DNA of 63,954 bases, filler included, from Klebsormidium nitens (GCA_000708835.1; 5 parts of 5 records of this genome joined end to end with filler, not necessarily neighbours in it); one strand, 5' to 3'; positions 13,347 to 38,455 are shown, numbered from the whole stretch's first letter. Numbers and translations: made by a program. Notes: generated by a model from the letters alone, not told the origin.

Positions 13347-16300
13347 CTAGTCCAACGTTGACGGCCAATGCGCAATGGATTGCAACGTGGAGACAAGGAG
13401 CGTCGGGTTTATCGGTTTGCTCAGATACTTATCCATGCCGGCATCCAAGCACTTGTTCTGGTCCGACGCCATGGCGTGTGCCGTCAGCGCCACGATCGGA
13501 GTGTGATGGCCGGATGCGAGCTCAATCCGGCGGATGGCTCTTGTCGTATCATAACCGTCCATTATTGGCATCTGTGTAGAGAAAAAAAGGCATCTCAAGT
13601 TTAGACTCCAACAATTGTAGACCGCCAAACTTGATGCAACTGCAGTGCATCGAAAGCGCCGGGTCGTGATGCAGCCGAGCACGATAGAGCCACAATGTTC
13701 TGGAAAGAGCTAATTATATCTCCGAGATCTTTTCAGAATTGTGCACTCTGGAGCATGATCGGAGACGCGGCAACGCCCACAGTCACACAAGAGGCAAAGA
13801 GGAGCTGACCTGACAGTCCATGAGCACGCAAGTAAAGAGAAGTTCCGGTTCCGTCGTTCCGTTTCCGCCAGGAGCGTAGTGCTTCGTGAACATGTCCACG
13901 GCTTGCTGACCGTCGCTTACGGCCGTCACTTCGGCGCCCAGCCGCTGAAGCATGGCGACCGCGAGTTTCTGCAGGAAACGTAGTCCAAAAATGTAGCGCT
14001 TTCATATGAAAACGCTCCCATTTCTAGGATCCTCGAGCAGGGGCATTCGAGAGAGCCCTACATGTCTCTTGTATTCTGCTTAGAAGTATTGCCAGAAGGA
14101 CGTCTTTCCGATAGACCAGCTGACAAAAGCCTCCGCATCCGAAAATCATACTCGCTTGATCAATATGGTTCAGGCGGACTGTTTTTTGTTCTTCGTATAA
14201 AGAGAGGGAGTTAACTGCTGGTAACCTCCTAAAGTGCTCGTCCGCTTGTGTCCGAGTAGCATCCAACAGGTGGCCACGCCAACGAAGAGTCAACAAGCGA
14301 TACTGAAAAAGGCAAGATAGTGAGATGCATGCGGTTTGGCAAAATCAAGTCAGTCCTTCCTTTCGAATTGGGTCTCTTCCCCAACTCGAAAAGCTACAAG
14401 AAAAAGAATGGCCATGGATCTCAGAGGAAAGACCCGTGAACCGTAAATGCAGAAAGGGGCCTCTTCTCGAACAGTGGAAACAGACAACAAAGAAAGAAAA
14501 GCAAAACGGAAATGGAGAGCAGATCTTCCGTTGAAGTCACCAGGAAAGTGAGCGTTCGTTTGTCAGGAATACGAAGCTTGAAGCACTTGTCACTTGCCAA
14601 AAGTGGTGTCTTCGGAACAGCGGATCGAAAACAAGATCGAAAAGAGCAGACGGAAAAGGGAGTGAAAGAGCCCTCGTGAAATTCACCTGCAGAATGGGCG
14701 TGTCTTCTGCAACCAGGACCTTCATTCCCGCCAGTGCAGGACCGAGCTCCTGTAACTCCGCCTTGGCCGACTTGCGCTCCTTTTTCGCGGCCGCCGGAGG
14801 GATCCCCTCAGACTTTGCCTTTCCTGGTGTTACTTTCTTCTCCGGTGTTAATTCCCTGCCTAGTGTTAGTTGCCCCCCGGGTGTTAATACACCCCCTGGT
14901 GTTAGTACCTTCTCGACGCCTTCGCTGATAGGCTCTCGAAGCTGACTCTCGGCCTGTGCCGTTTGCGTACGAGTTCTATTCGTGCGAGGCGTCTGCGCCG
15001 TTTCAGAACCATCTTCACGTGTCAAACCGTTCTCGCCATCCCCAAAATGCACCCGGCCCTTATCATACGCCTCCCCCCCACCCCGGGGGCTCCTCCCGCT
15101 CTTCTTCCAGTCCTTGTCAGCACCCGTTTCGCTAGGCGCCACGTCAGCAGACACGTCAGCATACCTGCCCACGTGGCCGATGGGGTGCGTAAATGCGCCC
15201 TCTGGCGAAATTCCGTGGTCGCTGACGTCACCCCAGCGGAGCGACTCAAGCCGCTCTGACATCGCTTCGAGTAGGGAGTGGAGGCGCGACCAGTAGACGG
15301 GCTTGGTGGCGAGCAGAGCGCTGCCCCCAGGAGACCACGCTTTCAATACCTGTGAGAAACGGGTCACACAGTGTAAAGATCCGCCCCACTGTTGTAACAA
15401 TCCTTGCTGACTTGACACTCATGGGGCTAGCTGAGCGCTGCCTCCAAGAGACCACGCTTTCAATACCTGCAGATAGGAATTCACGTATTGTAAATGCTCG
15501 CCCTTATGTCCAATCTGGTGCTGACGTTGCGATCAGGAGGCTAGCAGAGCGCGGCCGCCAGAAGACAATGCTTTCAGTACCTGCAGAACAATTAATGCGG
15601 TTTGAATAACCGCCTCAGGTGTACATAATTGTTGCTGACGTGGCACTCAGGAGGCTAGGAAAGTGCTACAGCCAGGAGACCACGCCTCAGTACCTGCGAA
15701 AGAGATTCACACAGTGTAACTAATCTCCCTCATGGTGTGACTACCCGTTGCTCACGAAGCACTCAGGAGGCTAGCAGAGCGTTGCCCCATGCTTTCAGTA
15801 CCTGCGAATGAGCTTTACGCAGTGTGAATAATCTCCCTCATGGTGTGAATACTCGTTACTCACGAGGCACTCAGAAGGCTAGCAGAGCGTTGCCCCATGC
15901 TTTCAGTACCTGCGAACGGCAATGTGAATAGTCTCCCTCGTGGTGTGACTACTCATTGCTCACAAGGCACTCAGGAGGGGAGCAGGGCGCCGACGCCAGA
16001 AGACCACGCTGTCAGTACCTGTAAAGTAGAGCTGACGCACTTAAAATTCCCGCCCTCTTGGTGTGCGTACTCCTTGGCTGACGTGGACGTCGACCTCGGC
16101 CGTCCACGAGAGACCGCATCAAAAGCTTCTTGACTAAAGAGCGTAACTTGGTCGCCTTCTGAAAAGAGCAATCCGACGCTTAGCGCCCTCGATTGTGCGA
16201 CTCTACCGCCCCAATCTGCTTGACCTAACAGTGGACCCAACTCGAAGATGAAAGCACGACACGGATTTGTGTCTTGGGATCGTGTTTGGGCGTCCAACGA

Positions 16301-19300
16301 GAGAGCCAACTGTGCTCCCAGACTCAGCCAAGCAAAGAAAGCCTTCTTCATTTGCACCCCTCAGAAAGAATGTCACTCTTACTCCAGTATGTTCCTTCCT
16401 TGTCCTTCTTCTCCTGATACCACAGAGGCAATGTTTGGAGCTTCGAAACGAATGGTCGAAGGACGAAGCGCCGTTCTTTGTTTCTTTCCGCTGTTTCCAA
16501 CCATGTTCCGCTGACTTCAGTTACCTTCCGCTATTCTCCTGCTGATTCCTGGCAGATTCTGCTTTATCGGCCACCAAAGAAGCAATCTTCGGAAGATTCA
16601 TTCCTACCTGGCGCGTGGAGGCGGGGGTCTCCGTGGAGACGAGCCAAGCAATGACAGCGCCAGGCGCAATTTTCTTTAGCTGTTCGAGACAGCGCTCCAG
16701 CCCCTGACCGTCCTGGTCCGGGGGGGTGACCTGAATGTCGAGGACCACCAAAAGCGCGGGGGGGCCTGCAAAGCGGGGGGGGGCGGATATTCAGTAAACA
16801 GTCAACTGCTTTTCGAAACATCAAATCAAACTTGAGGTGCTCTTAGAGCTAGTCCAGGGCGCTGGCATCAAACCATGTCCTCGCTCGGGACAGCGCTCTA
16901 GCCCCTGGTCATCCTTATTCGGGGGGTGACCTTCTTATCACTGACCACCATAAGCGCGGCGGGTCCTCTGCAAAGAACGGGAAGAAACATTTAGCAACTA
17001 GTAGCTTGTGCTGAGTAAACTCGCGCAAGATAGCGCTCCAGCCCCTGACCGTCTCGATTCGGGGGGGGTGACCTGAATGTCGAGGACCTCCAGAAGCGCG
17101 GGGGGGTCTGCAAAGAGGGAGAAAGAATCTTCAGTGATCAATAGCTTAAGCAACCTTGCTCAAGATAGCGCCGCTGACCGTCCTGGTCTGGGGGGGTGAC
17201 GTGAATGTCGAGGACCTCCAGAAGCGCGGGGGGGTCTGCAAAGAAGGCGAAATACTGTTCAGTAATCAGTAGCTTCTGCTAAGCAACCTCGCCCCAAGAC
17301 AGCGCTCCAGCCGCTGACCGTCTCGATTCGGGGGGGTGACCTGTATTTCGAGGACCTCCAGAAGCGCGGGGGGGTCTGCAAAGAAGGCGAAATGCTGTTT
17401 AGTAATCAGTAGCTTCTGCTAAGCAACCTCGCCCCAAGACGCGGTCCAAGCCTTGAGCGTCTTGATCCGGCGGGGTGCCTTGATATCGAGGACCTTCAGA
17501 AGCGCGGGGGGCTCTGCAAAGAGGGGGAAATACTATTCAGTAATCAGTAGCTTCTGCTAAGCAACCTCGCCCCAAGACTGCGCTCCAAGCCCTCAGCGTC
17601 TTGATCCGGCGGGGTGCCTTGATATCGAGGGCCACCAAAAGCGCAGGGGTTCCTGCGGATGGGCTGGGAAGCAGATCCAGTGATCAGTAGCTTAGGCTTA
17701 GGAAACTCACTCCTCGCTGTTAAAACGTCTTGACGTTGTCTGAGTAGGTCTGAGTACCAAAGTCAAGATGATGATGACAAATGATTTCATTAGTACTTGC
17801 GTTCGGAAAGTAAGAGATGGTTTGGTATTCGGAGAGTGCTGAGCCGGAGGGGTTAGAATAACACCAATCGGAAAGCAGAAAACAGACAAAAACCGCCTCA
17901 AAAGAGCATCACGGAAAGCGGAAAGCGGAAAGTGCAAAGATAAAACGAGAAAAGGGACAACAAGCAAATAGCGGAAAGCTCACTTGTATTTTCGCCACTT
18001 GAATGCGCCTCGCCCGCTTCCAGAATGTCCATGTTGATCGCGACGCTCTCCTGAGGCCTGACGTCAGGGCATATGCCTCCTAGCGCCGGGGCAGCGGCCG
18101 AGGAACGCCGAGTCAACCTTTCCGGGTTTTCGCCAAAGGTCTCGTCCTGACACCGCTTCATTGAGGCGAGCAAGCCGGACCAGTTCTGCGCTTCCCGAAC
18201 CTCCAAACCGTGCTCGCGTATGAATCTGCATATGACAGATGGGGCCTCAGAATCTGTGCCTTCTTGAGCTCCGAATTCAAACAAAGCTTCTGTGGGTGTT
18301 GAGCTTCAAGCTAAACCTTTGAAAAGATTACGAATCTCAAAAGGTGACCCTGACTTTTGGGTAGAGATAAGGAGCAATCCGAACAACTTACAAAAGGCTA
18401 CCTCTTTTGAAAGAGAACTGTAACGAGGTTCCAGATTCACGAAAGCGCTATCTATACAACATATAATACCTGTGCCCTTTGCAATGGAGTTGGTGAGGCC
18501 ACAGCTCATCAACAAGTTGACTGCTTCCTCCCCCGAACGCGATCTGGCGGCTCAGATGACACAACAACAGCACGCAGCAAGTTGCTGCTTCATCTGGTCG
18601 CAACTCTGACGGCTTAACCGCCCAACCTTTCCAATGGAAAACTAGAAGTGCTTATTCGTCGCAAATGCTCTCGCTCAACCAATAACGAACGGCTCAGATG
18701 AAACTTGCACGTATTGCCTCCTCACCTGGCCGCGATCTGACGGCTCAGATCGCCTGGGATCCCCAGCACGACACGTGTCCCCCGAGGGAAAGTGGTGCGT
18801 AGGGGCAGGTCTACCGGGTTGAACCGCATGGAGTGCCGCACCTCCGAGGCGCGCTCAAAGCACACGGTGAAGCCCATCAGAGTACCGGGGCCGGCCTTGT
18901 CTTTCACGCGGATTTCTCCGCCCATCATACCAACTGCGAAAAGGGGCGGGAAATAGCTGGGCAATCGACCGATATCAGCTTCCTGCTTTTCAGATTATGG
19001 GGGCACTGTGTGGTTTGTTATGCTTCAGTGGATTGCCAACAGCAACTGCTGATAAGATCTCAGCGCACAAGGTAAAGCCCATCAAAGTTCCGGGGCCGGC
19101 CTTGTCTTTCACGCGGATCTCACCTCCCATCATACCAACTGCGGAGGGGAGAAATAGCTGGTGTCTGTAAGAGACATCGCATTTCTGTGGACACGTTTTC
19201 GAACACTGTAAATACGACAATCTAATCTGATAAGACGTGAACCCATCAGAGTCCCCAGTCAAGCCATGTCTCTTCACGTGGATCTCACCTCCCAGCATAC

Positions 19301-22300
19301 CGACTGCGAAAGAGGGGGGAAACGGCAAGAACAGAGAGTTTTGACTCTCAGGTAAGGTCCGGTCTGTTATGATTCGTGCGGTGTTGCTGAGAGCATGACC
19401 GAAAAGAGTCCAAAGCACGCGGCGAAGCCCATCTGTGTACCAGCTCCTTGTATTTCACGCAAAGCTTGCTGCCCATCATACCAAGTGCGCAGAAGAAACA
19501 TAAGCTAGTCCGAAGTGAAGGATAGCGCATCCAATTCTCTTCCATCTCTGACCACGCCTCTTGTTTGGACGCTGACCGCTTGACTGGTGCGAAAGTCGTG
19601 GGTGCACGCTCCAATTGGGGTTTGCTTTCCACTTAAACGTGATTAGCAGATGAACGCAAAGTCTTGAAGATATCGCGCCCAAGGGGTTGATACATCTCAG
19701 TAGGGTGAAAGAATGGCGAACGGAGCCCCAAACAGATTCAGCAAACGGCGAGGAAGAAGCTGATGGGCTTCAAGAAGCGACGACGCTGGAAACACGAGGT
19801 AAATACAATCGACGACAGCAATTCTTGATGAAAGACCGCACGATCCCGAGTCCTAGGTCCGTGACGAGATTCACTGACCGCTTGAGCAGCAGTAATGCTT
19901 TGTAAGGTAGACAAATGGAAAACAACGCCAGCGATCCGAACAAGAACTCACCAAGAGACCGCACGATACCTAGACCCAGGCCCGTCCCCCCATGCGTTCT
20001 CGTCGTTGACGAGTCCGCTTGGACAAAGTTCTCGAACACGAGCTCTCTCTTTTCGGGGGGGATGCCGAGCCCCGTATCGTCCACTTCAAACGCGTAGCGA
20101 AGCTTCTCCCGCCACTGCTGCGGGGGGTCCGATTCGCCACGGCTTGACACCCTCCGTCGGAACATCCGGCGGAAGAAGGTGGGTCCGGCGGAAGAGACCA
20201 GGAGGGCGGAATCGGAGTCGGGTCTGGAGGGCGGTGAGTCTTCGACGGGCCGGCCCCTGAAGATTAGCGAAGCGGAAAGTAGTCAGTGCACTGGGTCTAG
20301 AGGCCAATTACTATCTTTCCTTTCCGGCCTCATCGGCTGAGCTTTGGAAGAAGTAGAGATTCTTCTGGATCGACAAGACAAAACGACAGCATCTCAAACA
20401 TGGCACTTCTTCTCAGATAGTGCAATGTTCCAACTAGCATAGTCATCAAATACTTTCAGAGCTTTTCCGTCGAAGTGCAGCTGAATAGCAACTAAACAAG
20501 CGCGTGCCGGACTTCTGACCGATTTTCAGGAAGGGTCCTTGGTTTTTAGGCGAAAGCATCGACTTTAGGCGAAAGCATCGACTCCTGTCAAAAGTGTCAA
20601 CTCTAAGAAAATTTCAAGTAAGACCCAAAGACGCTCAACAACCAGACCCGCTTTGACACAACAACATCGATCGCGTGAGGGCTGGTGGGCAGGGCGTTTT
20701 TGTAGCTTCGAGTGGTGTAAGCATATCCTTCGCTTTCGTTGGATCAGATGTCGATTGAAACGATTTCAACAAGGAGAAACAGCATTGAGAACCGGACACG
20801 GGTGAACGACCCTGAGAAGGGGACAGGCCTTCGAAGGCGAGCTGCAAATCAATTAACGACAGAAAGGAGATCGGACTTCCAAGCCGAGCTGCAAATTCCA
20901 GGAACGAAGCCTTACCTGACTACGATCTGTCCCCCCTGGGACGAAAACTTGATGGCGTTCGACAGCAGGTTCGCAAACACCTGTCGGATCCGCGCTTGGT
21001 CGCCTTTTACCGCTCGCTGCATGTTTTTGGCCAGATCGAGCCCGATTTCGATGCCCTTTTGGTTGCACTGCACGCTGAACATGTCGACCAAGGACTCGAG
21101 CTCCCCGATCAGGTCGAAATCCGCCCACTCTAGATCCACTTTGCCGGCTTCGATCTGCGGGATAGACAGAGAACTTTGTTACATGAAAGTGTCTTCCCTT
21201 TTCCAGTTCATTGGTTGCTTCTCTCTGGAAGGCTGAAGTGGAACAGAAAGGTTGTTCTTTGAAAGCGTCTTCCTTACTACAGTTTCGGTTATTGCTTCTC
21301 TCCGGAGGACTAAGATGGAACAGAATTCTAGAAGTATGGAAAGGTCCTCCCTTCTCCACTTTTGATTGGTGCTTCCCCTAGACGTCTGAAGTGCGACCAG
21401 ACCGCTAACTCACAAGAGCGGTTTACAGAAGATGCCTGTAAGCCTCATATGCTACCGTAGGTACTTCCAAATGACGAACAAAGAGGCGTCCGGAACGTGA
21501 CAATATCCTGCGGTCTTCCAAGTTTTGTACGTCGCCCTAAGATTTTGTCCTTCTAATCTTGGACCTGTCTGGTACCTCTTGGGCACAAACAAGCCTTGTG
21601 TGTCGACAGTTCTCTGGGGACACCATGAGCGTGCCAATAACACATTTGTTGCTGGAAGTGCCAGATTTTTGTGTCCACTAATCCAGTGACATCAACGCAA
21701 CAGCAGACCGAGTTTTGCACACCAATGTCTCAACCACACTTGGCAGGCCGCTCAGACGAAGATGGAAAGAAGCCGTTGGGCGGCAGATGAGAGCGTAAAA
21801 AGAGACTGACCTTTCCAAGATCCAGAAGGTTGTTCAAGAGGCCGAGCAGCCCGGTAGCGCACTGCCGGATTTGCGATATGTTCACCTGCAGAAGGAGCCA
21901 GATCAGATTAAGTTGACTTTAGACTTGGTATAGACTTGGTACACACTTGACTTAAGCTTGGTTCAGACTTGGTTTAGACTTGGTATGAACTTGGTTTTGA
22001 CTCGGTATAGACATGGTTTAAATAAATCTCAATGTCCTTACTCCTCAAGGGGGCTAAGAGGTGGACCCCCGGGGCGCTGCATGTGCTCTTTGGACTTTTA
22101 AGCTTTCGCTTCCAGCACGCTGCACTTTCGTAATGCGGGACTCGCTTCACACTTTCAAAGAAACGACAAGCCAGGTCAGCATAAACCTGCGAATCTGTTG
22201 GCCGGATACCCAACGGTTAACACCCACGACCCCCCAAAAAAGCGTCAAAGGCACTTCCACAAGCGTCTACGTCCGCTTACGAAGCGCCCATCACCCGATT

Positions 22301-25300
22301 GTTTGCTGCCCAACTTTTCTGGGCTCAGCTCATTGATCGATAGAATGTCCGGCAGCCCCAAGAGCCCACCATCAGCGTCCAAACAGCGTCCAAAACTTGT
22401 ATGACGGGCAGAAAAGGGACCCGTAAGCGTGTAAAGAACGTCCGCAGTGTCAAAGAGCGTCTGAAAGCCAGCGATCGATAGAATGTCCCCCAATCCCAGA
22501 GTCCCCACCAAAGCACCGTCCAAAAACCGTCCGATTTGCTTTTAAAACGCAGACAGGGCACCCGAAGTGCGTCTCAAAATGGCGTCAAAGAGCGTCCGAA
22601 GGCGTCCGAAGCAACTCACCAGATTCTCTGGGCTTCGTTCATCAGTCAACGAAATGTCCAACAATCCCAAGATCCCGGCCAGAGGCGATTAAACAGCGTC
22701 CGAAACTGACCAGAAAGCGTCCTAAAGAATGTCCAGTAGTGTCAAAGAGCATCTAAAAGTCCCTCACCAGATTCTCTGGGCTCAGCTCATCGGTCAACAG
22801 GATGTCCAGCAATCGTAGGATCCCGGCCATCGGCGTCCAAACACTGTCCGAAACTTCCTTAAAACGCAGACAAAGCAACCGAAGGCCGTCCGAGCGCCTC
22901 AAAGAACGTCCGAAAGTTGTCCGAAGTCACTCACCAAATTCTCTGGGCTCAGCTCATCGGTCAAAAGGATGTCCAGCAACCTTAGGATTCCAGCCATCGG
23001 TGTTACACAGCGTCCGAAACTGATCGATAAGCGTCCGAAAGAACGTCCAGTAGAATCATAGAGCGTCCGAAAGTCACTCACCAGATTTTCCGGGCTCAGC
23101 TCGTCAGTCAGCAGAATGTCCAGCAACCCTAGGATCCCAGCCATCGGCGTCCGCAGCTCGTGCGACATGTTGCTCAAAAACCGACTCTTTGCCTCGCTGT
23201 TGGCCTCCGCGCGCGCCTTCGCCTCGCCGAGCTCCGCTTTCAGGCGCACCTCCGTCGAAACCCGTGTAGTCAGGCAGAAGACCAGGACGCATCCGATGGC
23301 GAAAATGGCGCACGAGAGGCCGACCAGGAGGAGGATAGTTTGGCCGCGCCGCTCGTCGATGGGACCCATTATGCTTTGCCTGTGGCAAACAAATCCGGGT
23401 TATGGAGGGTTATATAGAGGAAAGTGGATTCGAAAGACTTGGTTTGAGCACCTTTGTTTGCTCGGGCAGTCTGCAGCGCCAGCATATGAGACCTCTGCTT
23501 TGTGTGTGTTTGGATCAAGGAATCTAAGTTCAAACATACGGAGCAACTTTCATGGACTTTTCAAATGCTTCGACTTCGCGCGGGCTTCGGAAAACTGGCT
23601 TGTTTTATGTTGAGTTTTAAGTCTGCAATCTTTGAGAACAATGATGTGCAAGGGCCACCAACTTGGACCCCATGACTTCTAGGCGGAGGTGAGGATCTGA
23701 TAACCTGATGATCAAGTGCCTCCGCGCTGCCCTTCTCATGGGGCTTCAACAATTCAACGCTGAGAAGAACCATCGTGCTAACCAGCAAGTTCTGGATCAG
23801 CGGGAGGTTTTATGAAGCTGAGAACCATAGGACTCGGTTGAAAAGGGAGGTTTTCCATCGCCTAAACCAAGCACTGCAATGCGTGGAGATCAGATAGCTG
23901 TGGACCGCTCCGAGACGCTTCTGGCAACTTCGTGCTGGGACGCTTTGCAGGGTCCCCGAATCAACTACCACGGACAAGGACCAGGTGCGCTTAAAGAGTG
24001 TAGGAGCTGATGCATCCTGCGATCTTAGAGCTCCTTGGTTGCTGAATCTGTTGTCGCAAGTCGGGCAATGAGAGCAAAGTTGGCCGATACTGTATCCACA
24101 AAACGCAGCGACAGCTTAGACATCAATGCCCCTGTTAAAGGAGGGCAGCTTTGAAAAAAGTTGTTGAAGCAAAGTTAGGGAATCGAGATGTAGACCGAAA
24201 CGGATTGCTTTGCTTACCTTGGAATCATTAGCACTGCCACGACTTGGAAGTTGTAGTTGGAGAGCGGCAGAGTGTCGACGTAGTAAAGTCTCCCCATAAG
24301 GTTCACATTGGAATGTATCGCGGGCGTTGTCATCAGTAAGTCGGGGGGCCACCTGGAAAGAACGGCGTTGTGACAAAGTGTTTTCTTTCCTCTTCTGTTT
24401 CTTAAGGGAGTCTCACTTCGGATCGAGTCTAGCGCTTGAACAGAATCTGGAACATGTCCGTATTGAAATGCCTCGTCCTTTCTAACACGCCGCTATACTC
24501 TTACGAACGTTTCTCATCTCGCCAATGCTTGATAGTTACTGAGATTACTCGGAGCAACGCATTATCAGCCGAGACGGCAAGGTCAGATGTAATGAGGACT
24601 CTGAAACAAAGAAGAACATAAAGACAAGTCGCCTTACAAGACCCATCAGTCAACGATCGAGACGCATTTGTGACTGACGAACTCAAGGATCGGCCTCACT
24701 TCCAACTAACTTCTGGACGAGTACTTTTACCAGTAGCATTGCGGCCGTTTACTGGAGTAAATGCCCTCCACGCAAGAACTTACGTCTTGCTGATGAACGC
24801 ATCGGCTGCCCGGATGAGAGCGTTGTCTGACTGGTTGACGAACTTGAGCGCGCCCAGAGTGTTGGACTGGAAGTCGCTGCTCGAGTTCGCCGCAGCGACC
24901 AGAACATTGTCCATCGTCTTGAAGTAGAGACTCCCTGAAAATATGAGACACTCGAGTTCTTGCGTGTAGAACAGGCTAGAAGCAACAGAATTTGACAATC
25001 TCCCTTCTCTCCTTTCAGGGAAGCAGAAATTGACCTTGTTTCCGATCCGCTCTTGGGACACCGAAGCAGGGACACAGCATTCTCAGGGTCGTCTCTGGTA
25101 TTTGCGGTGCTGACAAGAAGCCCGTCGACTGTCGCTCCTTGAAGCCAACCGAGCTACCGAAGTACTTCCTCTGGTTGGGGTAAACGAACGTCAAAAGACG
25201 TCGGCGACCGCTGATTGTCTATGCGTTGCCATCACAGACAAGTGTGCACGTTCTCCTGAGGCCCACACAATCCAAAACCTGTCAAGCATGTTCGGGATTC

Positions 25301-28300
25301 AAGATATGATTCTCTGATGCAGGTGAAAGATACCGCCTACTGCCTATCTGATTGGCATTGTGCATACCTCTCTTCCAGAAATGCCTCACAGAGACCGACT
25401 GCCCTCAACTCCAGGCCTGACTTATAAAAACTCAGGTCGTCAAACGTCGTCAATCCGGGTCATCTGACGGCTCCCACAGCTTCGCAACCTTCCATCGGAC
25501 GATTCACACCACCCTTCAGATCCAGGCCCAATACATAAGCGCTCAGGTCGTCCAGCAATTGCGACATCTCACAAAGCTCTTAAAATTCCTAAGGAACGGC
25601 TCAGAAACACTCACCGCCCTTCAGGTCCAGGCCCGATATGTAAGCGCTCAGATCGTCCAGGGTCGTCGCAATCGTGTAGATCCCGAGCGTCTCGTTGGTG
25701 ACGTTGCTTTTCACCGGCGCAGCCACCAACAGAACCGGGTACGACTGGATCGAAAACAGCAGGTTGACGAAGATGCTGTCGGGGGATCCCTGGCGCGCGG
25801 CAATGTAGTACGCGCGTTGCCGGAAGTCGACGTTTGTGTTGTACAGCTGGGGTTTTCCGATGGGATTGCCGTTCTTGTCGAGAGACTCGATGTACGAGGT
25901 CTCGGGCTGGAATTGAGCGACACTGCACAAAGAGGGACGGGCGCTGACATGAGGGCGGCATTCTGTGGATATCTAGTCGTTCTATAAAGGTCATCCCGCT
26001 TTTGTCTAGCGACAGGAGTCGCCCGAATGTAACCCGGCAATCATGTAGAAGGTGAGACAACCGCTGCCATGAGGATTTGTAGCTGTCAGCATTCAGAGCA
26101 AGTTCAAGAATAGCTTTATGCCGGGTTCGTCCAGAGTTTCTGTGGATGAGCCCACAGAATGCTGCACAAGGGGGAGAGACGGGGTGATATAAATCCAAAT
26201 CTAATAATGACAAGATTCTTTAGATGAATCTGCTAGGACTTCATGCCGTTCCTGTCAAGAATTGTAAGAAACCTCCAGATGGGAGCAGCATGCAGAGAAG
26301 GGGTCATGCGAGTTCCAAATTGCGAAGCAATTCGGTTCCATACAATCTCTAGTCTTCTGTTTCTCATTTCGGTCATAGATGTGAAAATCGCCCAATGGAT
26401 TTTACGGCTCACTGCGCATGTTTATTCAAGTTGATGAACGGAAGGAGAAAAGCATTGGGGACAACAGCAAGCGCCACCAAACATCTGCAAACCGTCCCAA
26501 CGAGAATTTCCCTTATTCGCGGCTAGAAAAGACTTTACAGTGGTTAAGCGTCAAACTACTAGACTACCAACAAGACGGAACAAGAGGGTTTCAAAGTTGA
26601 AAAGCTACCGCACCTGGTATTCGCAAACGTCCTGAAATACCGCGGCCCCCCTGTGGTGTTCTGGGAGTAGGTGTACTGGTACCGCCCGTTCTCCAGCACG
26701 AGACCGAAGTTGCGCACGTGATGCTTGTTCGAAACTAGGGGCCAGGTCTTCCAGTCCAGCTGCAAGCGAACAAGCCGAAAAAGCTTTGTTCAAGACGGCA
26801 GCTGAGATTTGGGGGTCAGAGTTGATCAAGCTTTTGGTGCTCAGAAGCGAGCTCGAAATGCACAACTGCTTCTCTGTTTCAAAGGAAGTGCCGTCAAGTG
26901 CCCCAACCAGTTCCTCAACTCCGAAAATGCCGAGCTGCTTCAATCCATTCATCAACCTGTCACGATTATGTATCTTGCAAATCTGTAGGCATACCGCCCC
27001 CGGTTTCAGAAACAAAGCGGAGGACTTCAAATCGGCTGTGTACAGCGCACCTCGCAGAAGGGGAAGGACATCAGATTCAATTCCAGTCGACAGAGGCTGA
27101 ACAGAATCAGATCCCTCAACCCGTAAAGCACACCCGCCACCCCTTACCTCGGTGCCGAAGAAACTCCCGGAGGTCTGGTACTGGCTGTGCACGGCGGTCC
27201 CGGCAACTTGGAGCACTGCGCTCTGGTCCTTCAGCCTGTTGTTCATGAGCTGGATGGACCGGTCCAACAGGTCGTACCTAAAGAAAGGCAGTGATGGTTG
27301 GATATAAATGGTTACTCCTGCGAAGTTGAGCGCTTTGTCCATTGTAGGGACAAACTTTCGATGATAAGACGCGTCCGCCTTCAGGACTTTTGACGCTTCG
27401 CACGGTCCGCACAACAGATGATACAGTTTTCTGACTTGAAGGTTCGGGCTGCACGGGAAAGAACCTTTAACTGCTCGAGTTGGTCACTCACAAGGGAAAA
27501 CACTAAGTAGTAGACTCGGGATGCTAATGTTACAAGCAGCGGTAATAGCAAGCGATCTCATATGCGGGCTACCTTCACTACGGTTTAGGCTAGAGGGGGG
27601 GTGCATATCAGAAGGGGTATCTATCAGAGAGTGAACACAAGCCCTCAAATGACCTCCAGACCTTGCAGTTTCTAAAACCGTAGCGACAGATTATGACAAG
27701 TAAAAGGTCAGATTGCTAGTTGCAACAATAGCTCAGCCCTTGATGCGCAAGTGCCGAGGCTAGAGCTTTGTAGAGGCTTTAAAAGTGCCACTGATTGACG
27801 AACAGTGAACGGCCTGGTTACGTCCAAGCCATCAAACTGCATCTATATGTAAAAACTAAAGCAGAAATTCTGCGACCTTTTTCAGGAGTCTTGACAAGAA
27901 CTCGAGGACTTTTACTGCATTCAAGATTCCTTACCGCAAGGAGTATCCAAGCCCTCGAACGGCATCCATCGAGCTGCGTTGCGTCCAGTAGAACGTGACC
28001 AGCGTCGTCAGGCAAATGGCGACCGCCATCAATGTCTGCCACAAGAAAAGTTGCAATCGGGTTAAGGTAGGCGTCGGATGTTAGCGCTTGTGAGGTGCAC
28101 GCTGCGTGAGTAGAAGTCTTTACGGACCAGATATAAGAGCTTGGTAAATCCTGGACTACAGCAACATAGATCGTGTAGGGAGGACGGGCGCCATTTTGAG
28201 CTTCTTTCAGGCTTTCTTTGGAAGTTTGCAAATGTAAAAGTCGCGAGGTGGTTTGGTTCCCTGGGCCAGCTCTACCTCAATTGGTGAATGTCCAATCCCT

Positions 28301-29840
28301 CATGTCATCCTTCCGACCAGTAAAACGCTCAACTGTGGCTGGAATCAGCTCAGCGCATCAGCGCTAGCCACTTTGTTCAGGATCCGGGTAGATGGAATGA
28401 GCTCAGCTAATTAGGCTCAGCTCAGATGGTTCGTTGAACCTTAAAGCGACTTCCTCAGAGTTGGAACAGTGGAAGCTGACACATGCACCCATTTTCGTCT
28501 GCGCCAAGTTTCAAGGGTCCGCTCTGATTTACCCTTTGAAACACAGCTGGTATTACATCTACATGTGAGCGTCCCTAAGTCGGCCCTTCTTGGCTTCACA
28601 AATCCTAGCCCAACTAGAATCGGTGCTTCAATCCAAAATTGTGGGTCCCGTTAAAGTCCACCCCCCTCAATGAGCCAGGCCCTCAAATTGGATTATGAAG
28701 ATGACCGCATCTTGCTGGCCAACTTTCATTCTCGCAAGATTACTACTGCGGCAAAGAGAACATTCGGAATGCGCAGCTGGGGGCGATCGCAGCTCTTCAG
28801 GAAACAGAGCGAATAGTCTCAAGTCCTGCCATTCGGCACTTGCTTGCCCCGATTGAAGAGAGGTTGGTGAACTCTTCAGACTTCAAATATTTTTCGTCCG
28901 GCCACAACAAGGACGTGTGTGCTGGAACCTCTTCAATTGAATGAGGAGACTTGACGAAATGCTTTGTTGCACTGCAGACCTCAATGCACTATAGGCTCCC
29001 AGATCTAATCTTATTTCTGGTCTTCTCGACCTGACTCGAGGTGCAACATGGCCCTTTGAAGAATGCTCCTTAACAATATGGATAGAGTCGAGTGTACAAA
29101 CAACCACGACAATCGACCAGCCAAACCGGCGTTGTTACGGAACACAGGTTACGAAACAGGCACACATACAGAAAGTAATGGTGACTTGGAAATTTTCCGG
29201 TGTGCTCAGCTTGCGCTTTGAGCAACGGCCGCGAGAAGCGTACAACCAAGTGGTGTTGAGGTTTGCGGCATTTGCGGAACTCCCTCTGGCATCCTTAGCG
29301 GGCTTAAATTGTGAGACTAAACCCTGTTACACTTTGCCCCTTGCGTACGTGCTTTGTCTAAGTGGTCCAGCGAGGAAAGGAACTCCAACGACGCATACGA
29401 GATGCTGCGCATCGTTGCTCATCCGCTGCAATTGAAGCACCTTCATAGGGATGCGCGAGCATGATACATATCATTCCATAACGGCCTGCCTCAAGATGGA
29501 ACCAGAGCTGAACGATTGGACTTGGTTGTACGGCCGTTTGATGGTGCAAACAACATTCGTATGCGAATCTCAATTGAGAAAGTACAGAGGCTCTTTACAA
29601 CAGGTATCCTCTTACATTGCAGCAGTCAAAGTGGCTGCCAACCTTGATGTCGCGAGTGCTAAAAAGCAGAACTACAGAAAAGCCTCTCAACAATGATGAG
29701 TTTGCTGAACGCACCATGATTGCTAGCCGGGCAAAGAGCACGGTGTAGCTCCCTTGGTAGCAATGCAGGTCCACCCGCTTCGCTTTGGGCCCGCTCTCAT
29801 CATCGCTGACCTCAGCCTTGGCCCCTGGTGATGCCGCCAT
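13347..29840 (-). CDS. AHK1: AHK1-like hybrid sensor histidine kinase (TM1 - Cache-like extracellular domain - TM2 - HisKA - HATPase_c - pseudo-receiver - receiver), 17 exons, 1222 aa
   Basis: Exons, all GT-AG and phase-consistent, 3669 nt in total: 29715-29840, 27935-28035, 27148-27277, 26614-26759, 25615-25922, 24784-24934, 24218-24352, 23082-23379, 21811-21885, 20916-21154, 19952-20256, 18726-18933, 17984-18225, 16608-16765, 14687-15349, 13810-13968, 13347-13571. Motifs: [26 protein letters not shown]...[22 protein letters not shown]...[20 protein letters not shown] (H-box), [11 protein letters not shown] (N-box), EVDDTGLGI (G1), HGGTGLGL (G2), VLVAED, VLMDCQMP, LSKP. These match my recollection of Arabidopsis AHK1; orthology is not tested. 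Confidence 0.93.
15420..16025 (-). repeat. Tandem array of six ~108-117-bp copies of the acceptor and exon start at 15349
   Basis: Copied CAG|GTA(T/C)TGA acceptors at ~15466, 15580, 15693, 15801, 15909 and 16018. Confidence 0.9.
16850..17670 (-). repeat. Tandem array of six ~130-200-bp copies of the acceptor and exon start at 16765
   Basis: Repeated gcgctccagcc(c/g)ctgaccgtc...gggggggtgacc...gaggacc...agcgcggggggg..ctgcaaag, with acceptors at ~16968, 17108, 17236, 17376, 17514 and 17654. Confidence 0.9.
18538..18705 (-). repeat. Short echoes of the exon end at 18726 in the downstream intron
   Basis: cgcgatctggcggctcagat (18538-18557) versus exon cgcgatctgacggctcagat (18731-18750). Weaker copies at ~18603 and ~18690. 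Confidence 0.7.
19068..19490 (-). repeat. Three decaying copies of the acceptor and exon start at 18933 ([11 protein letters not shown]...)
   Basis: Copied acceptors at ~19139, ~19304 and ~19485. They translate as [32 protein letters not shown] and [13 protein letters not shown]. Confidence 0.92.
19822..19872 (-). repeat. Single echo of the G2-box exon end (19952)
   Basis: Translates [11 protein letters not shown] versus exon [11 protein letters not shown]. Confidence 0.85.
20546..20583. repeat. Perfect 19-bp intronic tandem duplication
   Basis: ttaggcgaaagcatcgact occurs twice in tandem. Confidence 0.9.
21183..21400. repeat. Three ~75-bp intronic tandem units next to the acceptor at 21155
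   Basis: gaaag(tg/cg/gt)...ttcc...ttgcttc(t/c)c...gaag(t)g...cagaa occurs three times. Confidence 0.7.
21915..22022. repeat. 12-bp minisatellite (tagacttggt..) next to the acceptor at 21886
   Basis: About 8-9 degenerate copies of agacttggta. Confidence 0.85.
22305..23015 (-). repeat. Five ~150-bp decaying copies of the HisKA exon end, donor and intron start (23082)
   Basis: Copies with retained GTGAG donors at 22934, 22767 and 22619; more decayed copies at ~22480 and ~22310. Confidence 0.93.
25395..25566 (-). repeat. Two ~105-bp-spaced copies of the Cache-domain exon end (25615)
   Basis: Translate [15 protein letters not shown] and [17 protein letters not shown] versus exon [17 protein letters not shown]. 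Confidence 0.88.
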
Positions 29841-32613: not shown

Positions 32614-35600
32614 CTAATCTCGTTTCCTCTTATGCGTATTTTTTTTGCTATAGGGACAATCATGCTCCGAGCCTCGCATTATTCCAAGACTTCCATCTGG
32701 ATCGCATTTTCTACACTTCTTTCCTACTCCCTTACCGCCCTGATTCCCCGCCTTCGGTCGAGAGCTTTCCACTCCCAGCGGTCGGACAACAAGCGGACCG
32801 GTGTACTGCTGAACAAGGTTCTCCGGCGCACCACTGGACGGATCGACCTGCTCCAGCGGGCTCGCTGCAATATTGCTCCGCCCCTGATCTAGAGGCCCGC
32901 AGCCCAACGTCTGAGGAGGAAAAGGAGAGCTTGGAGGGGTCACGGTCGCCCCTGTCGGAGACGTGCTAGCATGCTCGAATGCGGAACTCAAGGCTACGCT
33001 TGTATTGTCCGCTTCGCGCGAAAGGAGTGAGCGTACAAGCTGGCGCTCGTAGCGTGTAATGTCGCGGTAGTCCTTGAAGTAAAGGTCGCTGTCTATAGCT
33101 TGCTGATAACCACCTTGCGCGAGGCCCCAGAGTTGCCTTACGACTGCTGAGTTGAACTCCATCAGAACGGCTCTGTAATTCGTCCCGCCTTTGGTTGCAT
33201 GCTTCATGTACAGTTCCAGGAAAAGGTTGTGCTCGCTCGTAGTTGTGATGGGCCGCTTGAAGTGGACGAGATTGAAGTTATGCAGCGGGGGCAACGAGCG
33301 CAGCTTTCTTCTCCGAGTAGGTGGCATGTTAAAGTGGGGGGTGAAAGGATAGTTAGAAACGCCACGTGGCTCAGTCCCCACCTCGATGGGGAAGCCAGTA
33401 CTCGCTGCGAGCTGGCTCCGCACCCCCCCACCAGGTACAGCGGGCCGTGGCGTGAAGGCGGGCTGGCTGTGCACGGCCGGGACCCCACCAAGAAGAGCGG
33501 GCCGTGGAGCGAAAGCGGGCTGACTCCGCACGCCCCCGCCAGGAAGAGCGGGCCGCGAGAGGAAGGCGGGCTGGCTGTGCACCCCCCCCTCCAGGAACAG
33601 CGGGCCGAGGCGCGGATGCGGGCCGACTCCGCACCATGCCCCCAGGAACAGCGATCGGTAGGGAGAAGGCGGGCTGGCTCTGCACGCCCCCGGTTGGAAC
33701 TGCGGGCGATGGCGTCAAGGCGGGGTGGTTCCGCAAAACCCCACCGGGGACAAGAAGCGGCGACGCGGAGCCTGGCTGATTCCACAACCCCCCACCCGAG
33801 ACCATGGGCGTCGATGCAAAGGCGGGCTGGTTGCACGACCCCCCAGTAGAGACATGGTGTTGCGCGCCCCGCACCTGGACTGCGGGGACGACCGGCTGAT
33901 TGCGCGCGCTCCCCGCCAGGACTGAGGGGGCCGGGAGGACGACCGGCTGATTGCGCGCGCCACCCCCCAGAACTGAGGGGCGGGGGGACGACCGGTTGGC
34001 TGTGCGCGCCGCCCCCCAGGACGGAGCTGGACGGGGAACGNNNNNNNNNNNNNNNNNNNNNNNNNNNNNNNNNNNNNNNNNCCCCGGGACTGAGAAGGAC
34101 GGGGGACGACCGGCTGGTTGTGCGCGCCATCCCCCCGGACTGCAGAGGGCGGGGAGAGAACCGGCTGGTCCTGAGCGCCCCCGCCAGACACACTTGCTGG
34201 CGTCGAGACGGCTGGCTGGTTGGGCGGTTCACTCCCCCCGAGGACAGGGGTTACTTGCGTGGGTGCAGCGCCCTTGTGATCTGGCTCGGGACTGGCGTCG
34301 AAGTCCGGGTCTGCAATCAAAACGAGATATTATTGGCTGCATGAAATATGCAACTTGAAAGGATCGAACCGGAGCATCGAGTAAGGAATACTAAAAGGAG
34401 AAAAGCTTTAGAGCACTAATGAGGAAATGCTCACAACGTGACCGTTCTTGACTCAATATCTAGGTACACTTTAGTGGGAGAATCAGGAGTCTGTGAGTTG
34501 CATAACAGGTTGAGTCCTGATCGAAGCAAACTTTCGGTTCTTTTACGCACCGAAGTTGATTGTAAGCCTCAAAACTCAAACATGGTTGAACACAAAACGC
34601 TTATCAATTTGCTGATGCACAATAACAAGACCATGATATGTCCCGAGTTGCAGAGAACCTACCCTCGGAGTCCAGGTACGCAACCTCCGGGAACTGGGTC
34701 GGAGCGAACTCGCCCTCTTGGAAGGCCGCCGCGGCTTCTTGGAATCCGGCGGGGGTGCACTGGATGCCGAAGCTTTCAGCGGTCTCCTCCACAGTAAACT
34801 GCACGTCCCTATACGCCGGGGCCAAACCGAGAGCTTCCATGTGCTCCCCAATCCGGTACAGTATTTCAAGGTCAAAAGCGGGGCCGTGGTCCGGTTCACC
34901 GCGGTTCGCTTGCCTCATCCGGATGTTCCACCCCGTTAGCCACGTGCACGCCACCGCCTACGCCAGCTCAGCACTGATGTTGTAGTTCTTCAGGATCGCC
35001 TGAAAGTGCACGTGGAAGCCTTCCAGTCTTGAGCCCACCCGTTTGCACGCATACTGGGGGCGGGCGTTTGCACCGCGCGCAGGCTTGAGATAGTACATCT
35101 CCATATTTGGCGGATCTGCAATGTGGGATATGATGTTAGACTCAAATACATGGTGTATCCGTAACATGAAGGCAAGCAAACAGGAAGTATTCGCAAATCT
35201 CTTCCCTGACCCAGCAGTCCAACAACGGCCCTAACCTCACTCTTAACCTGACGCTGATCTGGCTGCACATGCTGCCCAGTGAGATCCATATGATTGTTAT
35301 GACTCAACAAACTCTGATCAGAGCAAAGTACAACAGTTATCAACCAGAATCCAACCCAAGTCAGTAACTCAAAACAGTAAGCCAGATTCTAGAGGGCTGA
35401 GAACTTACAAGTAACCCTGCAGATTATAACTTGCCTTGCGAACGACAATCTAATCCAGACCCGAAGACATGCCAAGAGTTTCGGACCCTTTGACCCCGCT
35501 CGTAAGCCACTGAATAGACTCAGCGCCACTCACCGCTCAACAAACCAAGCCGCGCTTGGTCAAGTAGACCCTGAAACGCTCGTTGAGCGTCGAACCCAAG

Positions 35601-38455
35601 AAGGGGCTCCGAAGTGAGGGGGTTGACCTTGGACGACGCCTCGTCTCCAACCGCCTGTCCACCATCATCAAAACGAAGTCATTGGTAAGACAAATCTGTG
35701 ACCGAGTGCGAAAGCGTACGTAGATTTAAACCGTGCTTCTCACTGATGAGCTTGTCAACGCGCAAATGATTGGACACTCAGGGCAACATCTTTGCGAGCA
35801 GCTTATTGACGGAGCTCTGCAATCCGCTTGCTTAGAGTATATTTGGAAAACTGATAAGCATGCACATCGACCTCCTAGACTAACCAGTACGCCCAGCCAA
35901 CCTCTCTTCAACCCTGTCCAGCTAACCCCCATTTGTAAGCCATCTTGCACGATTGAGCTACAGAATTATCAGCTTCACTCAGTACTGAAAGCGTGTGAAA
36001 TCCTTTCAAAAGAACGTGGTTTGGTCAAAGGTTGCTCGTGACCAAGAATTGCCAGTGCAAATCTTTGAAGCAGCGCGCGGCCAAAAGGAAGTACAAGGAA
36101 AGCAAGGCTTCTCACCTCAAGCCGCGCAAGCAAGACCTCAGGGGGTGGTACTGCCTTGCGGCATCTCCGCAGTGCGTTCTTCCCGGACTTGTCTGAAAGT
36201 GTCTTCCCCTTCTGGTCAAGCTCCTTCATAATTCCCACCATGTCAGCTTGGTTTTTGACGAAGATCGCGTCGCTCAGCTTCCCTTGCAACCAACCTGGTG
36301 AACAAGTTCAAGGGGCAATTAACAACTCTACCAAAGGCTCTTCCTTTGCAAATGCTCTGACAACTTCCAGCACGCGTTGTTTATGTGGTCACTCTTGCAG
36401 TATGGTAAAGTGAAGCAGCAAATCATGTGCTGGACAGTTGCTCATCAACAGTAGCACTGCACTCAGGAACATCCAAGTCAACACTTTGCAGAGCTTCGCA
36501 AAATGAGCTGCCTAACAAAGAACTCAAGCTTTTGTGAGAAAGAGCACTGATCAAAGAGCACACTGCATGAGCCAACAGCCTTGCAACCCAGCTTGAACAA
36601 ATACCTCTGAAAGGATGATCTTCAGGGATGCGCTTGGTCACACGCATAATAGCGTGCAGGATGTCCATAAGGTACGCCTCCAGCCCGGGCCAGATGCCCA
36701 TGAAAAAGGGGCCCATCACCTCGGGCCAGTCGCAGAACAGCACGCGGGGCTGCAAGCAAGCAACATGCGCACTTGCAGTGAGGTATGTTTGTCATTCACC
36801 ATCGAGCGCTGATCTTGGTAAGAGCTCTCTGATCCGCAAAGTGCTGCGACAAAGTAAGAGACCAGAGCGATGAATTGCTGAGCAAGGGTGGATCAGATGG
36901 TGCACTATATGCTGGTGCAAGGCGGCAAAACAGAGCTTTGAATGCAATTAACAAGCAACTGTGGAAGCTCACCGCGCGACCTGCCGATGCCATCCGCTCG
37001 TAGATTTGCCGGAGATTGTCTTTAACAACCTCAAGGGACGTACTGTGCGTCCACAGGCTGGTAGCAACTTCTCCAGTCTCCGTCATCATGGTGAGGGTGG
37101 CCTCCAAAACGCGCTGCCCCTCCACGCCTCTGAAAGAACGGAAGATCAGTTTTCAAAAGCAAGATGCATGTATTGATGTGCGGATGCAACCTGGCAGTGT
37201 CATACGTAAGCCTTCCTCTGTGTTTGGTGGAAATATTGGAAACAAGAAGAGCACATGCCTGTCACAAAGACTCGGCAGACTTGCAAGTGGCAGCTTGCTG
37301 ACAATCAATTCAGATGTCCAGAAGCAAAGAAGCGACGTGCTGTTTGCATTGGGCGCCGTAAAAAGCTGGTTTGACATACCTGATCCTCCGCATCAGTTTG
37401 TGGCAGTGGTCGACCCCAACACACTCGCCTTTCACAAGCGCCATCTGCCTGTTGTATGTGGGTATATTTGCGGCAGCCTGCTGCAAGAAGACCGATGACA
37501 GGAGCGCTGGACCAGCAATCCAATCTGGAACTCGCTTCCCCATGGCCCAGCTTTGAACCGGCTGCTCAATCCCTGCCCCGCCACCAGCTGTGCCACCAAA
37601 GAACCTGCCTATACCAATCTGGCGCTCTGCTTCCGCCTCAGCCCGCTTTGCCTTCAACTCGCGCTGGTACTCATAATAAACAAGCTCTCGCCGTTTCTCT
37701 GCCAACACATGCAACTCCTTCACCAGGCGTGCAATGCGAGGAAAACCGACGGCTTCTGGAGCCAGAAAGTGGATGAGATCCTGCAGCGATCGCTCCACAG
37801 GCACGCCTGTCTCTGTGAAGTCGATGGGCAGCTGGTCCTTGATGAATGGGCGCAACTGATTGCGGATCTCAGAGCTGTGTGCTAAATACAGAGTGCTGCC
37901 ATAGCCCCCCTTGCCATCAGGTTTTGCATGGCAGTCCTTGCAGCGGTAATCCTGGGAGAGAATGAAGAGGGGTCTGTGAAGCCCCAGGGCCCTCACCAGC
38001 TTCGAGTACCAGCCATTGCGGACCACAGTGGCCCTGCCACAGCCCCTGACGCAGGTGAACTTCTCAGGGACAAAACCCTTGAAGAACATTTGCCAAGAGA
38101 GGACGATGATAGTACAACCCCAGATTTTGAAGGGCTCTACTCGAGGTGCACCGAAGCGAGAAGCAGACGAGGATCCTGCCTTCTCAAGCTTTGAGGAAAT
38201 GGTTGGATTAGGTGCTTCGAAGATATAAGTGTCACAGCCCTCTTTACTGCCAACCTTTTGCTTGATAGACTGGACCAAGGGCTCTAAAGGGGTTCCACTA
38301 TATGCAACTTCCGCAACTTCAGCAGCTGCACCTACTACCCCTGCATCCTCCATTGCTCCAAGCAAAGCTTTCAAAGGGATGTTTGGCAGCCCAAGGACAA
38401 ACCTCTCTGCTCCCTTGTCTCCTGGCTTCCTGCTTTGAACAGAGGAATCTGCATT
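32614..38455 (-). mobile_element. Intron-containing DDE transposase gene (DUF6729-like N-terminus, D..D..DxxH..E), apparently inactivated
   Basis: Phase-consistent exons ~37380-38455, 36973-37129, 36605-36749, 36116-36294, 35534-35654, 34663-35115 and 32614-34310. Motifs CVRGC...NGW...YRCKDC, VGVDHCHK, LFCDW, MDILHAIMR, SRLEGFH, C-terminal CRKC...HDC. In-frame TAG at 34958-34960 and frameshifts in the repeat tract. The 5' end runs into a gap. Confidence 0.8.
33390..34230 (-). repeat. Coding ~51-bp (17-aa) GC-rich tandem repeat, consensus like SQPAFxPRPAVPGGGVx
   Basis: Seen across ORFs 33715-34320, 33371-33874 and 32614-33582, with frame switches at G/C homopolymers. Contains an N gap. Confidence 0.85.

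Follow-up and report, generated by a model that had tools for sequence, protein, structure and literature searches.

A multi-exon hybrid histidine-kinase gene of Klebsormidium nitens carries copies of its own exon edges, here called echoes, in the introns that adjoin them. The gene lies on the minus strand, from about 29840 to 13347 of the 63,954-nucleotide (nt) stretch analyzed (the window), within the piece 13094-38502. We consider it likely that the echoes are junction-spanning minisatellites that are spliced out with the introns and kept dynamic by conversion beside a protein-constrained exon. Self-BLAST, repeat finders and alignments bear out the original prediction that seven junctions have one to six exon-edge copies each, the adjoining intron holding such copies at 7 of the 7 named junctions. 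A synonymous excess specific to the HisKA exon forms a small but real residue, unexplained by the junction-minisatellite model.

Junction arrays in a histidine-kinase gene

The gene and the echoes at its seven junctions are as follows; ranges of echoes refer to their exon-derived parts.

13347..29840, minus strand: hybrid histidine-kinase gene, multi-exon (Pfam on exon translations, RNA contigs)
22310..23179, minus strand: HisKA-donor array (self-BLAST and repeat finders), units of 147/167 nt, 4-5 echoes; real exon edge 23150-23082 with the donor at 23082, echoes at 23003-22935, 22836-22768, 22688-22620, ~22530 (partial) and 22379-22311
18854..19509, minus strand: acceptor array of the G2-box exon, units of 165-205 nt, 3 echoes; real exon start 18933, echoes beginning at 19138, 19303 and 19484
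16684..17713, minus strand: acceptor array of the exon starting at 16765, units of ~140 nt, 6 echoes beginning at 16966, 17107, 17235, 17375, 17514 and 17653, CAG kept in all
15305..16086, minus strand: acceptor array of the exon starting at 15349, units of ~115 nt, 6 echoes beginning at 15466, 15580, 15694, 15803, 15911 and 16018, CAG/GTA (slash at the splice point) kept in all
25399..25660, minus strand: Cache-exon donor array, units of ~110 nt, 2 echoes; real edge 25660-25615, echoes at 25555-25510 and 25444-25399
19829..19877, minus strand: single echo of the HATPase-exon donor (real edge 20000-19952), GT lost
18533..18582, minus strand: short echo of the 18726 donor edge, ~26 nt, 21/26 identical, in the intron 18725-18226, GT lost

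The exon translations match HisKA (Pfam E-value 8.8e-11), HATPase_c (1.2e-10) and Response_reg (3.7e-14), and with an H-box in HisKA and a C-terminal receiver domain the gene has the makeup of a hybrid histidine kinase. Its sensor is Cache-like, the dCache_1 match being weak (1e-06) and under the curated cutoff. All seven junctions are canonical on the minus strand (CAG/G or G/GTGAG). Spliced RNA contigs of ~5 kb from three runs give the exact exons 24352-24217, 23378-23082, 21881-21811, 21154-20915, 20255-19952 and 18933-18726, joined by GT..AG splices without exception; at their loose ends, the following exon begins at 18225 and the preceding exon stops at 24784. The junctions at 18933, 18726, 19952 and 23082 are thus RNA-proven, and those at 25615, 16765 and 15349 are based on homology with a relative and canonical motifs: the exon starts at 16765 and 15349 are backed by homology to L002, part of the orthologous locus described below, and the exon end at 25615 by homologs that share the ...DLKGG/ boundary.

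Five of the junctions (15349, 16765, 18933, 23082 and 25615) are long-period tandem arrays of 3-7 units of 108-205 nt, detected by Tandem Repeats Finder and self-BLAST, in which the terminal unit reaches 45-97 nt into the exon. The echoes are accordingly short (45-97 nt) beside exons of 208-304 nt. When the 14 RNA-validated exon edges are locally aligned to their own adjacent introns, 4 reach scores of 18-43 (the single echoes of the HATPase donor at 19952 and the 18726 donor score 20 and 18), and 0 of 84 comparisons of an edge with other introns score above 11. No arrays of this kind were found in a further 12.5 kb of K. nitens DNA, including a 4.8 kb intron-rich gene. Introner-like transposon repeats were rejected on these two grounds, that echoes match the adjacent edge only and that none occur in the further DNA.

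Echoes were claimed usually to keep their splice motif. In the alignments, 14 of the 15 acceptor echoes retain AG and 4 of the 8 donor echoes retain GT; HisKA echoes 1-3 retain the full GTGAG donor. Frameshifts and stops are present in older echoes. A predicted decay with distance from the exon holds roughly, with two exceptions: in the 16765 array divergence is greatest in the nearest echo, and HisKA echo 2 is nearer to the exon sequence than echo 1.

Some of the arrays have further features of their own. At 15349-16018 (minus strand), the real acceptor and all six echoes read CAG/GTA, an acceptor with a donor-like GT directly after it, the arrangement of recursive splice sites; recursive splicing as a general account was rejected, since the other acceptor echoes lack GT after AG. 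At 16684-17713 (minus strand), a donor-like GCGAG follows each echo exon-part (GTGAG at the distal end, ~17711-17702), so that these echoes resemble pseudo-exons of ~85 nt, with an acceptor on one side and a weak donor on the other; two C7/G7 runs are present in the units as well. At 22531-23081 (minus strand), the intron-derived part of each HisKA unit consists of 3-4 copies of a TTTCGGACGCT motif, and the HisKA exon holds TGCGGACGCCG precisely where the array starts; microhomology between TGCGGACGCCG and TTTCGGACGCT could have seeded the first HisKA duplication. An 11-nt microsatellite of ~9 copies lies at 21920-22017 in the same intron (23081-21882).

Splice-site use, unit turnover and related loci

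In contigs from three RNA runs, the exon-contiguous site is the only one used at 18933, 18726, 19952 and 23082, and no echo junction appears in RNA contigs at a depth of 65-153. The segment 22768-23081, which holds the first two HisKA echoes, is present in none of the 24 RNA runs listed for the species. RNA over echoes amounts to two unspliced fragments at a depth of 2-3, compared to 116-153 for the mRNA; one low-depth unspliced fragment spans 18967-19228 in the G2-box array. The original prediction had offered translation of the echoes, through alternative splice sites, as one explanation. The use of exon-contiguous sites alone in the dominant transcripts, the absence of 22768-23081 from the listed runs, the frameshifts and stops of older echoes, and an echo divergence in relatives that is at least the intron rate all speak against it.

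Tandem repeats are a classic source of misassembly, and the arrays might have been artefacts of that kind. Their units differ by at least 10% and are therefore unique at k=31, however, and another DNA run of the same sample yields contigs that agree with the window at every position of 20850-23357 and 18752-19428, from which we conclude that the arrays are not assembly artefacts. Independently assembled relatives also have a like array at the same junction. We give the artefact explanation practically no credence.

Three related loci were compared with the window. The first (L001/L002) is an ortholog on a 51.5 kb Joint Genome Institute metagenome contig, with 63-91% amino-acid identity per exon and introns that are not alignable to the window. 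The second (L087/L088, Logan contigs) is 87-92% identical to L002 at the nucleotide level, introns included, and the third (L084), a paralog, comes from the samples that gave L087. All of the related loci examined have an echo array at the HisKA donor; its periods are 147, 156 and ~170 nt. The other six echoed junctions of the window have no echo in L001/L002, and L084 has an acceptor echo at a junction without one in the window. Arrays thus come and go, the HisKA donor being a place where they recur or persist, and the arrays besides that of HisKA are lineage-specific.

Two other repeats were observed in these loci. A 108-nt-period repeat at L084:635-804, ~40 nt downstream of the Cache-exon donor, is purely intronic, the only one of nine long-period arrays examined that lacks an exon edge. 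A weak 158-nt direct repeat at L088:2421-2690 (L087 ~1427-1696) lies where a large indel separates L087 from L002, near the acceptor of the exon equivalent to window 24975-24784, and may be a further junction echo. Two metagenome scans for additional relatives with the HisKA exon returned nothing or only bacterial kinases, and three of the four matches of the Cache exon among protein representatives are open reading frame (ORF) fragments from the relatives.

The units are mosaics. In the HisKA array, unit types alternate (W0 like W2, W1 like W3), and the intron-derived parts pair W0 with W2 (0.18) and W1 with W3 (0.21); the exon-derived parts instead pair W1 with W2, which differ by 0.10 there and by 0.28 in the intron part. 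Units U3-U5 of the 16765 array show the reverse, with 3-9% difference in the intron part and 23-31% in the exon part. A simple molecular clock, with the intron part as yardstick for the exon part, was therefore dropped. Patches of sequence can be followed between relatives: the 5' half of L087 echo 2 differs at 2 sites from L001 echo 1 and at 6 from its ortholog, L001 echo 2, and the 5' half of L087 echo 1 has 2 differences to the exon as opposed to 5 to its ortholog. These halves are nearer to a non-orthologous unit or to the exon, which shows that gene conversion has acted from unit to unit and from exon to unit.

The same pair of loci provides a measure of echo divergence. The L001-L087 baseline is 0.085 in introns and 0.033, 0.019 and 0.108 at the three codon positions; echo 1 differs at 7 sites plus 1 indel in 69 nt, and echo 2 at ~13 of 69 nt, with a TGA stop in L087. 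Echoes of the L001/L087 lineage are not conserved above the intron background, and their rate is at or above the intronic one.

The mechanism that we propose would begin with tandem duplication of a 110-205 nt segment straddling a splice junction (45-97 nt of exon and 60-120 nt of intron), after which the array would grow by unequal exchange or replication slippage. The exon-contiguous unit, which is the first at donors and the last at acceptors, would supply the splice site, because only this unit yields an intact mRNA, and the rest would be removed with the intron, as seen at four junctions. Gene conversion, as seen in two related species, would copy patches between units and from the real exon, itself held constant at the protein level meanwhile. 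Under these conditions the exon-derived part of an echo would stay nearer to the exon than the intron-derived part, and differences between exon and echo would be enriched for synonymous ones, since changes on the exon lineage must be synonymous.

Synonymous bias and the HisKA excess

The original prediction read an excess of synonymous differences against a neutral benchmark of ~70% non-synonymous change. That benchmark is the wrong null, as one partner in each comparison is always a real exon that accepts only synonymous changes. A random substitution in the exon parts is synonymous with a probability of 0.26-0.36 (transition/transversion ratio of 1.4, measured in orthologous introns); because half of the divergence falls on the exon lineage, where only synonymous changes survive, the expected synonymous share is ~0.47-0.50. 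Counts for each exon and its adjacent echo, with echo boundaries set by the array edge and not by similarity, are given below (synonymous/non-synonymous).

HisKA: 10/1
G2 box: 6/3
16765: 6/10
15349: 3/3
Cache: 4/2
HATPase: 6/3

The earlier hand count for HisKA is reproduced exactly, whereas the others are less extreme with these boundaries. Against the exon-constrained null, the six arrays pooled have 35 synonymous and 22 non-synonymous differences (P=0.02), and the five non-HisKA arrays 25 and 21 (P=0.19). Across all arrays, changes at the three codon positions number 57, 46 and 85 (P=0.0005 versus uniform). The third-position share, 0.45, and the corresponding 0.43 for changes among echoes alone both exceed one third, and neither exceeds 0.45. 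A third-position and synonymous excess thus exists, as was claimed, and is strong for HisKA, but the other arrays are unremarkable. Most of the general bias simply follows from setting an intronic copy against an exon that is still in use.

One suggested cause of the bias was that synonymous recoding of the real exon is favored in order to break homology with its intronic copies. At least three of the shared HisKA differences (ATT, CTG, GAA) are indeed derived on the exon lineage when polarized with the L001 exon. However, among amino-acid-identical codons of the window and L001/L002, the fraction that differs synonymously is the same in echoed edges (50/102, or 0.49) as elsewhere (195/402, or 0.49), which indicates no accelerated recoding of echoed exon edges, and recoding cannot account for the scarcity of non-synonymous changes in the echoes themselves. 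We regard it as very improbable.

Several observations weigh against junction-spanning minisatellites as a complete account. The stronger synonymous excess of the first HisKA echoes lies outside that model: echo 1 has 10 synonymous changes and 1 non-synonymous change relative to the exon, echo 2 has 8 and 1, and 22 of 23 residues are retained despite the synonymous divergence. That divergence affects 10 of 22 identical codons between exon and echo 1, about the same as between the window and its L001 ortholog (11 of 22). Neutral decay of echoes was simulated with turnover of the units and conversion in both directions, under the rule that no conversion or mutation could alter the exon's protein; the synonymous share was 0.28-0.42, and simulated pairs with 9-13 differences had one or no non-synonymous change in at most 0.2% of cases. 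Changes among echoes alone, at 52, 43 and 71 for the three codon positions, also have a mild third-position excess (P=0.007 versus uniform). The RNA evidence covers 4 of 7 junctions and consists of assembled contigs, which lose rare isoforms (below a few percent). Finally, the role of the conserved exon as an anchor that re-seeds the arrays, which would explain their placement at junctions, is one that we infer rather than observe.

Echo 1 differs from the exon by 5 synonymous and no non-synonymous changes in L087, and by ~6 and 2.5 in L001. Over four loci, HisKA echoes total 24 and 5.5 (P=6e-4 against the exon-constrained null), a figure to be read with the caveat that HisKA was chosen post hoc and that L001 and L087 are not independent. 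Exon and echo differ synonymously about as much as the orthologs of the window and L001 do, and the introns of those two are unalignable. It is unlikely, though worth entertaining, that the first one or two HisKA-donor echoes are held protein-like by more than neutral decay and gene conversion; candidates for such upkeep are a rare read-through isoform, splicing decoys with a codon-periodic constraint, and exchange with a diverged functional copy.

The first HisKA echoes might be, or recently have been, under purifying selection as coding sequence, for example in a minor isoform that passes over the authentic donor, uses the echo-1 donor and adds 49 residues in frame. The counts just given from the window, L087 and L001, a pattern that almost never arises in the neutral simulations, would fit this, as would the GTGAG donor kept in echoes 1-3 and the array at the HisKA junction of every related locus examined. 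The first unit is 147 nt long, and in the window as in L001 the read-through frame stays in phase and meets no stop as far as the end of echo 1. In L087, however, a stop ahead of echo 1 (P0014) closes that frame. Echo 2, in a 167 nt unit, is out of frame and has a stop ahead of it, but resembles the protein no less than echo 1 does, and orthologous echoes change at or above the intron rate and gain a stop. The RNA contigs and the 24 listed RNA runs described above contain neither an echo junction nor 22768-23081. Selection on coding echoes is quite improbable.

Alternatively, the HisKA echoes or part of the exon edge could have been imported by gene conversion from a diverged functional copy (a paralog or haplotype), with the differences filtered before they became intronic. 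Exon and echo do show a synonymous divergence near the between-species level with amino acids kept, K. nitens is reported to have 67 histidine kinases (PMC6324907), the units are mosaics with exchanged patches, and six of the differences between the exon and echoes 1 and 2 cluster in the 3' half of the exon part. On the other hand, where the echoes contain intron sequence it is homologous to the start of the local intron, which is what a local duplication would produce. Searches whose reach excluded the K. nitens genome found no suitable paralog; L084, the one paralog encountered, has a different protein sequence over the HisKA stretch. A homolog search with the read-through ORF likewise returned the relative P0014 and no K. 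nitens paralog, full-length K. nitens kinases being outside its length window. We consider import improbable, and entertain it for HisKA only.

Selection against non-synonymous echo variants able to convert the exon (a conversion load) was rejected by quantitative reasoning, because a conversion rate that permits the observed synonymous divergence implies a selection coefficient of about the mutation rate.

Known systems, neighboring sequence and significance

Minisatellites whose first monomer extends across an exon-intron boundary are known from the human genes F7 (the IVS7 37-bp variable number of tandem repeats, VNTR), IFI6/6-16, CBS (IVS13), LMNB2 (100-bp monomers) and PDGF (81-bp monomers) (PMC1557585). 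In the human cases, splicing uses the donor that lies furthest upstream, and its repeats in the array stay silent as pseudo-sites (PMC1557585). The F7 IVS7 type is the closest known kind to the arrays described here, and all four of its defining features were found: a head-to-tail tandem array within the intron, a terminal monomer that covers the exon edge with the authentic splice site, a splice motif repeated in the intronic monomers, and use of the exon-contiguous site in mRNA (at four junctions). The K. nitens gene differs in that seven junctions of one gene are affected and three of its arrays are on the acceptor side, whereas PMC1557585 describes donor-side cases only. Each monomer includes 45-97 nt of coding sequence as opposed to 4 nt in F7, units diverge by 10-35% compared to the near-identical VNTRs of the known cases, and the HisKA-donor array recurs in related species. 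Junction density, acceptor-side arrays, coding length per monomer and the same-junction array in every relative are what is unusual here.

Other systems share part of this pattern. Internal gene duplications that span splice sites, as cited in work on intron gain, likewise duplicate a junction segment, leave a spare splice site and turn a piece of exon into intron. The K. nitens introns differ in being old; as intron positions are common to L001, L002 and L084, the duplications lengthen existing introns and do not create new ones. The AGGT model of intron gain (PMC3265369, PMC4974935) also produces intronic exon copies, by tandem duplication of an exon segment that contains AGGT, but the new intron it describes opens with copied downstream-exon sequence and closes with copied upstream-exon sequence (PMC3265369, PMC4974935). 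Each K. nitens echo, in contrast, repeats a single side of a junction that was already there, plus flanking intron, and intron gain of this type was rejected because exon boundaries are the same in L001, L002 and L084. In tandem mutually exclusive exons, adjoining coding copies also stay protein-like. The echoes are partial, with one splice site only, and the older ones contain frameshifts and stops; mutually exclusive or tandem alternative exons were rejected on account of the partial copies and the lack of alternative joints in the RNA contigs.

Some other repeats and ORFs were observed in the window. Within the kinase gene, an 18-nt in-frame coding repeat (LTPGG-like) occupies 14818-14908, in the linker exon upstream of the receiver domain. 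Transposon-like ORFs lie on the minus strand at 37310-38374 and 32614-33582. The former is 99% identical to K. nitens KFL_008150020 across 68% of its length, a match that places the window in that charophyte alga, and 67-85% identical to several other proteins, from K. nitens (including KFL_001890210 at 76%) and from public assemblies; it is thus a member of a repeated family. A tandem array at 33407-34239, with a period of 49-51 nt, encodes a proline/glycine-rich repeat in long overlapping ORFs and has a short run of N near 34040. As this proline-rich repeat is coding and belongs to a transposon-like ORF, it was rejected as a junction echo.

Minisatellites that span a junction offer natural experiments on how splice sites are chosen. 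This one gene, in a streptophyte alga near the base of the land plants, contains ~12 pseudo-acceptors and several pseudo-donors that are intact yet passed over by the spliceosome. The acceptor-side arrays are especially useful in this respect, as the machinery must bypass up to six upstream polypyrimidine-AG copies. There is also a lesson of method: even with no selection on an intronic copy, about half of its differences from a live exon are expected to be synonymous. If the HisKA residue is real, selection or directed exchange would be acting on spliced-out sequence; and if HisKA echoes are truly kept protein-like, there would be a function for an array that spans a junction and has lasted across Klebsormidium species.

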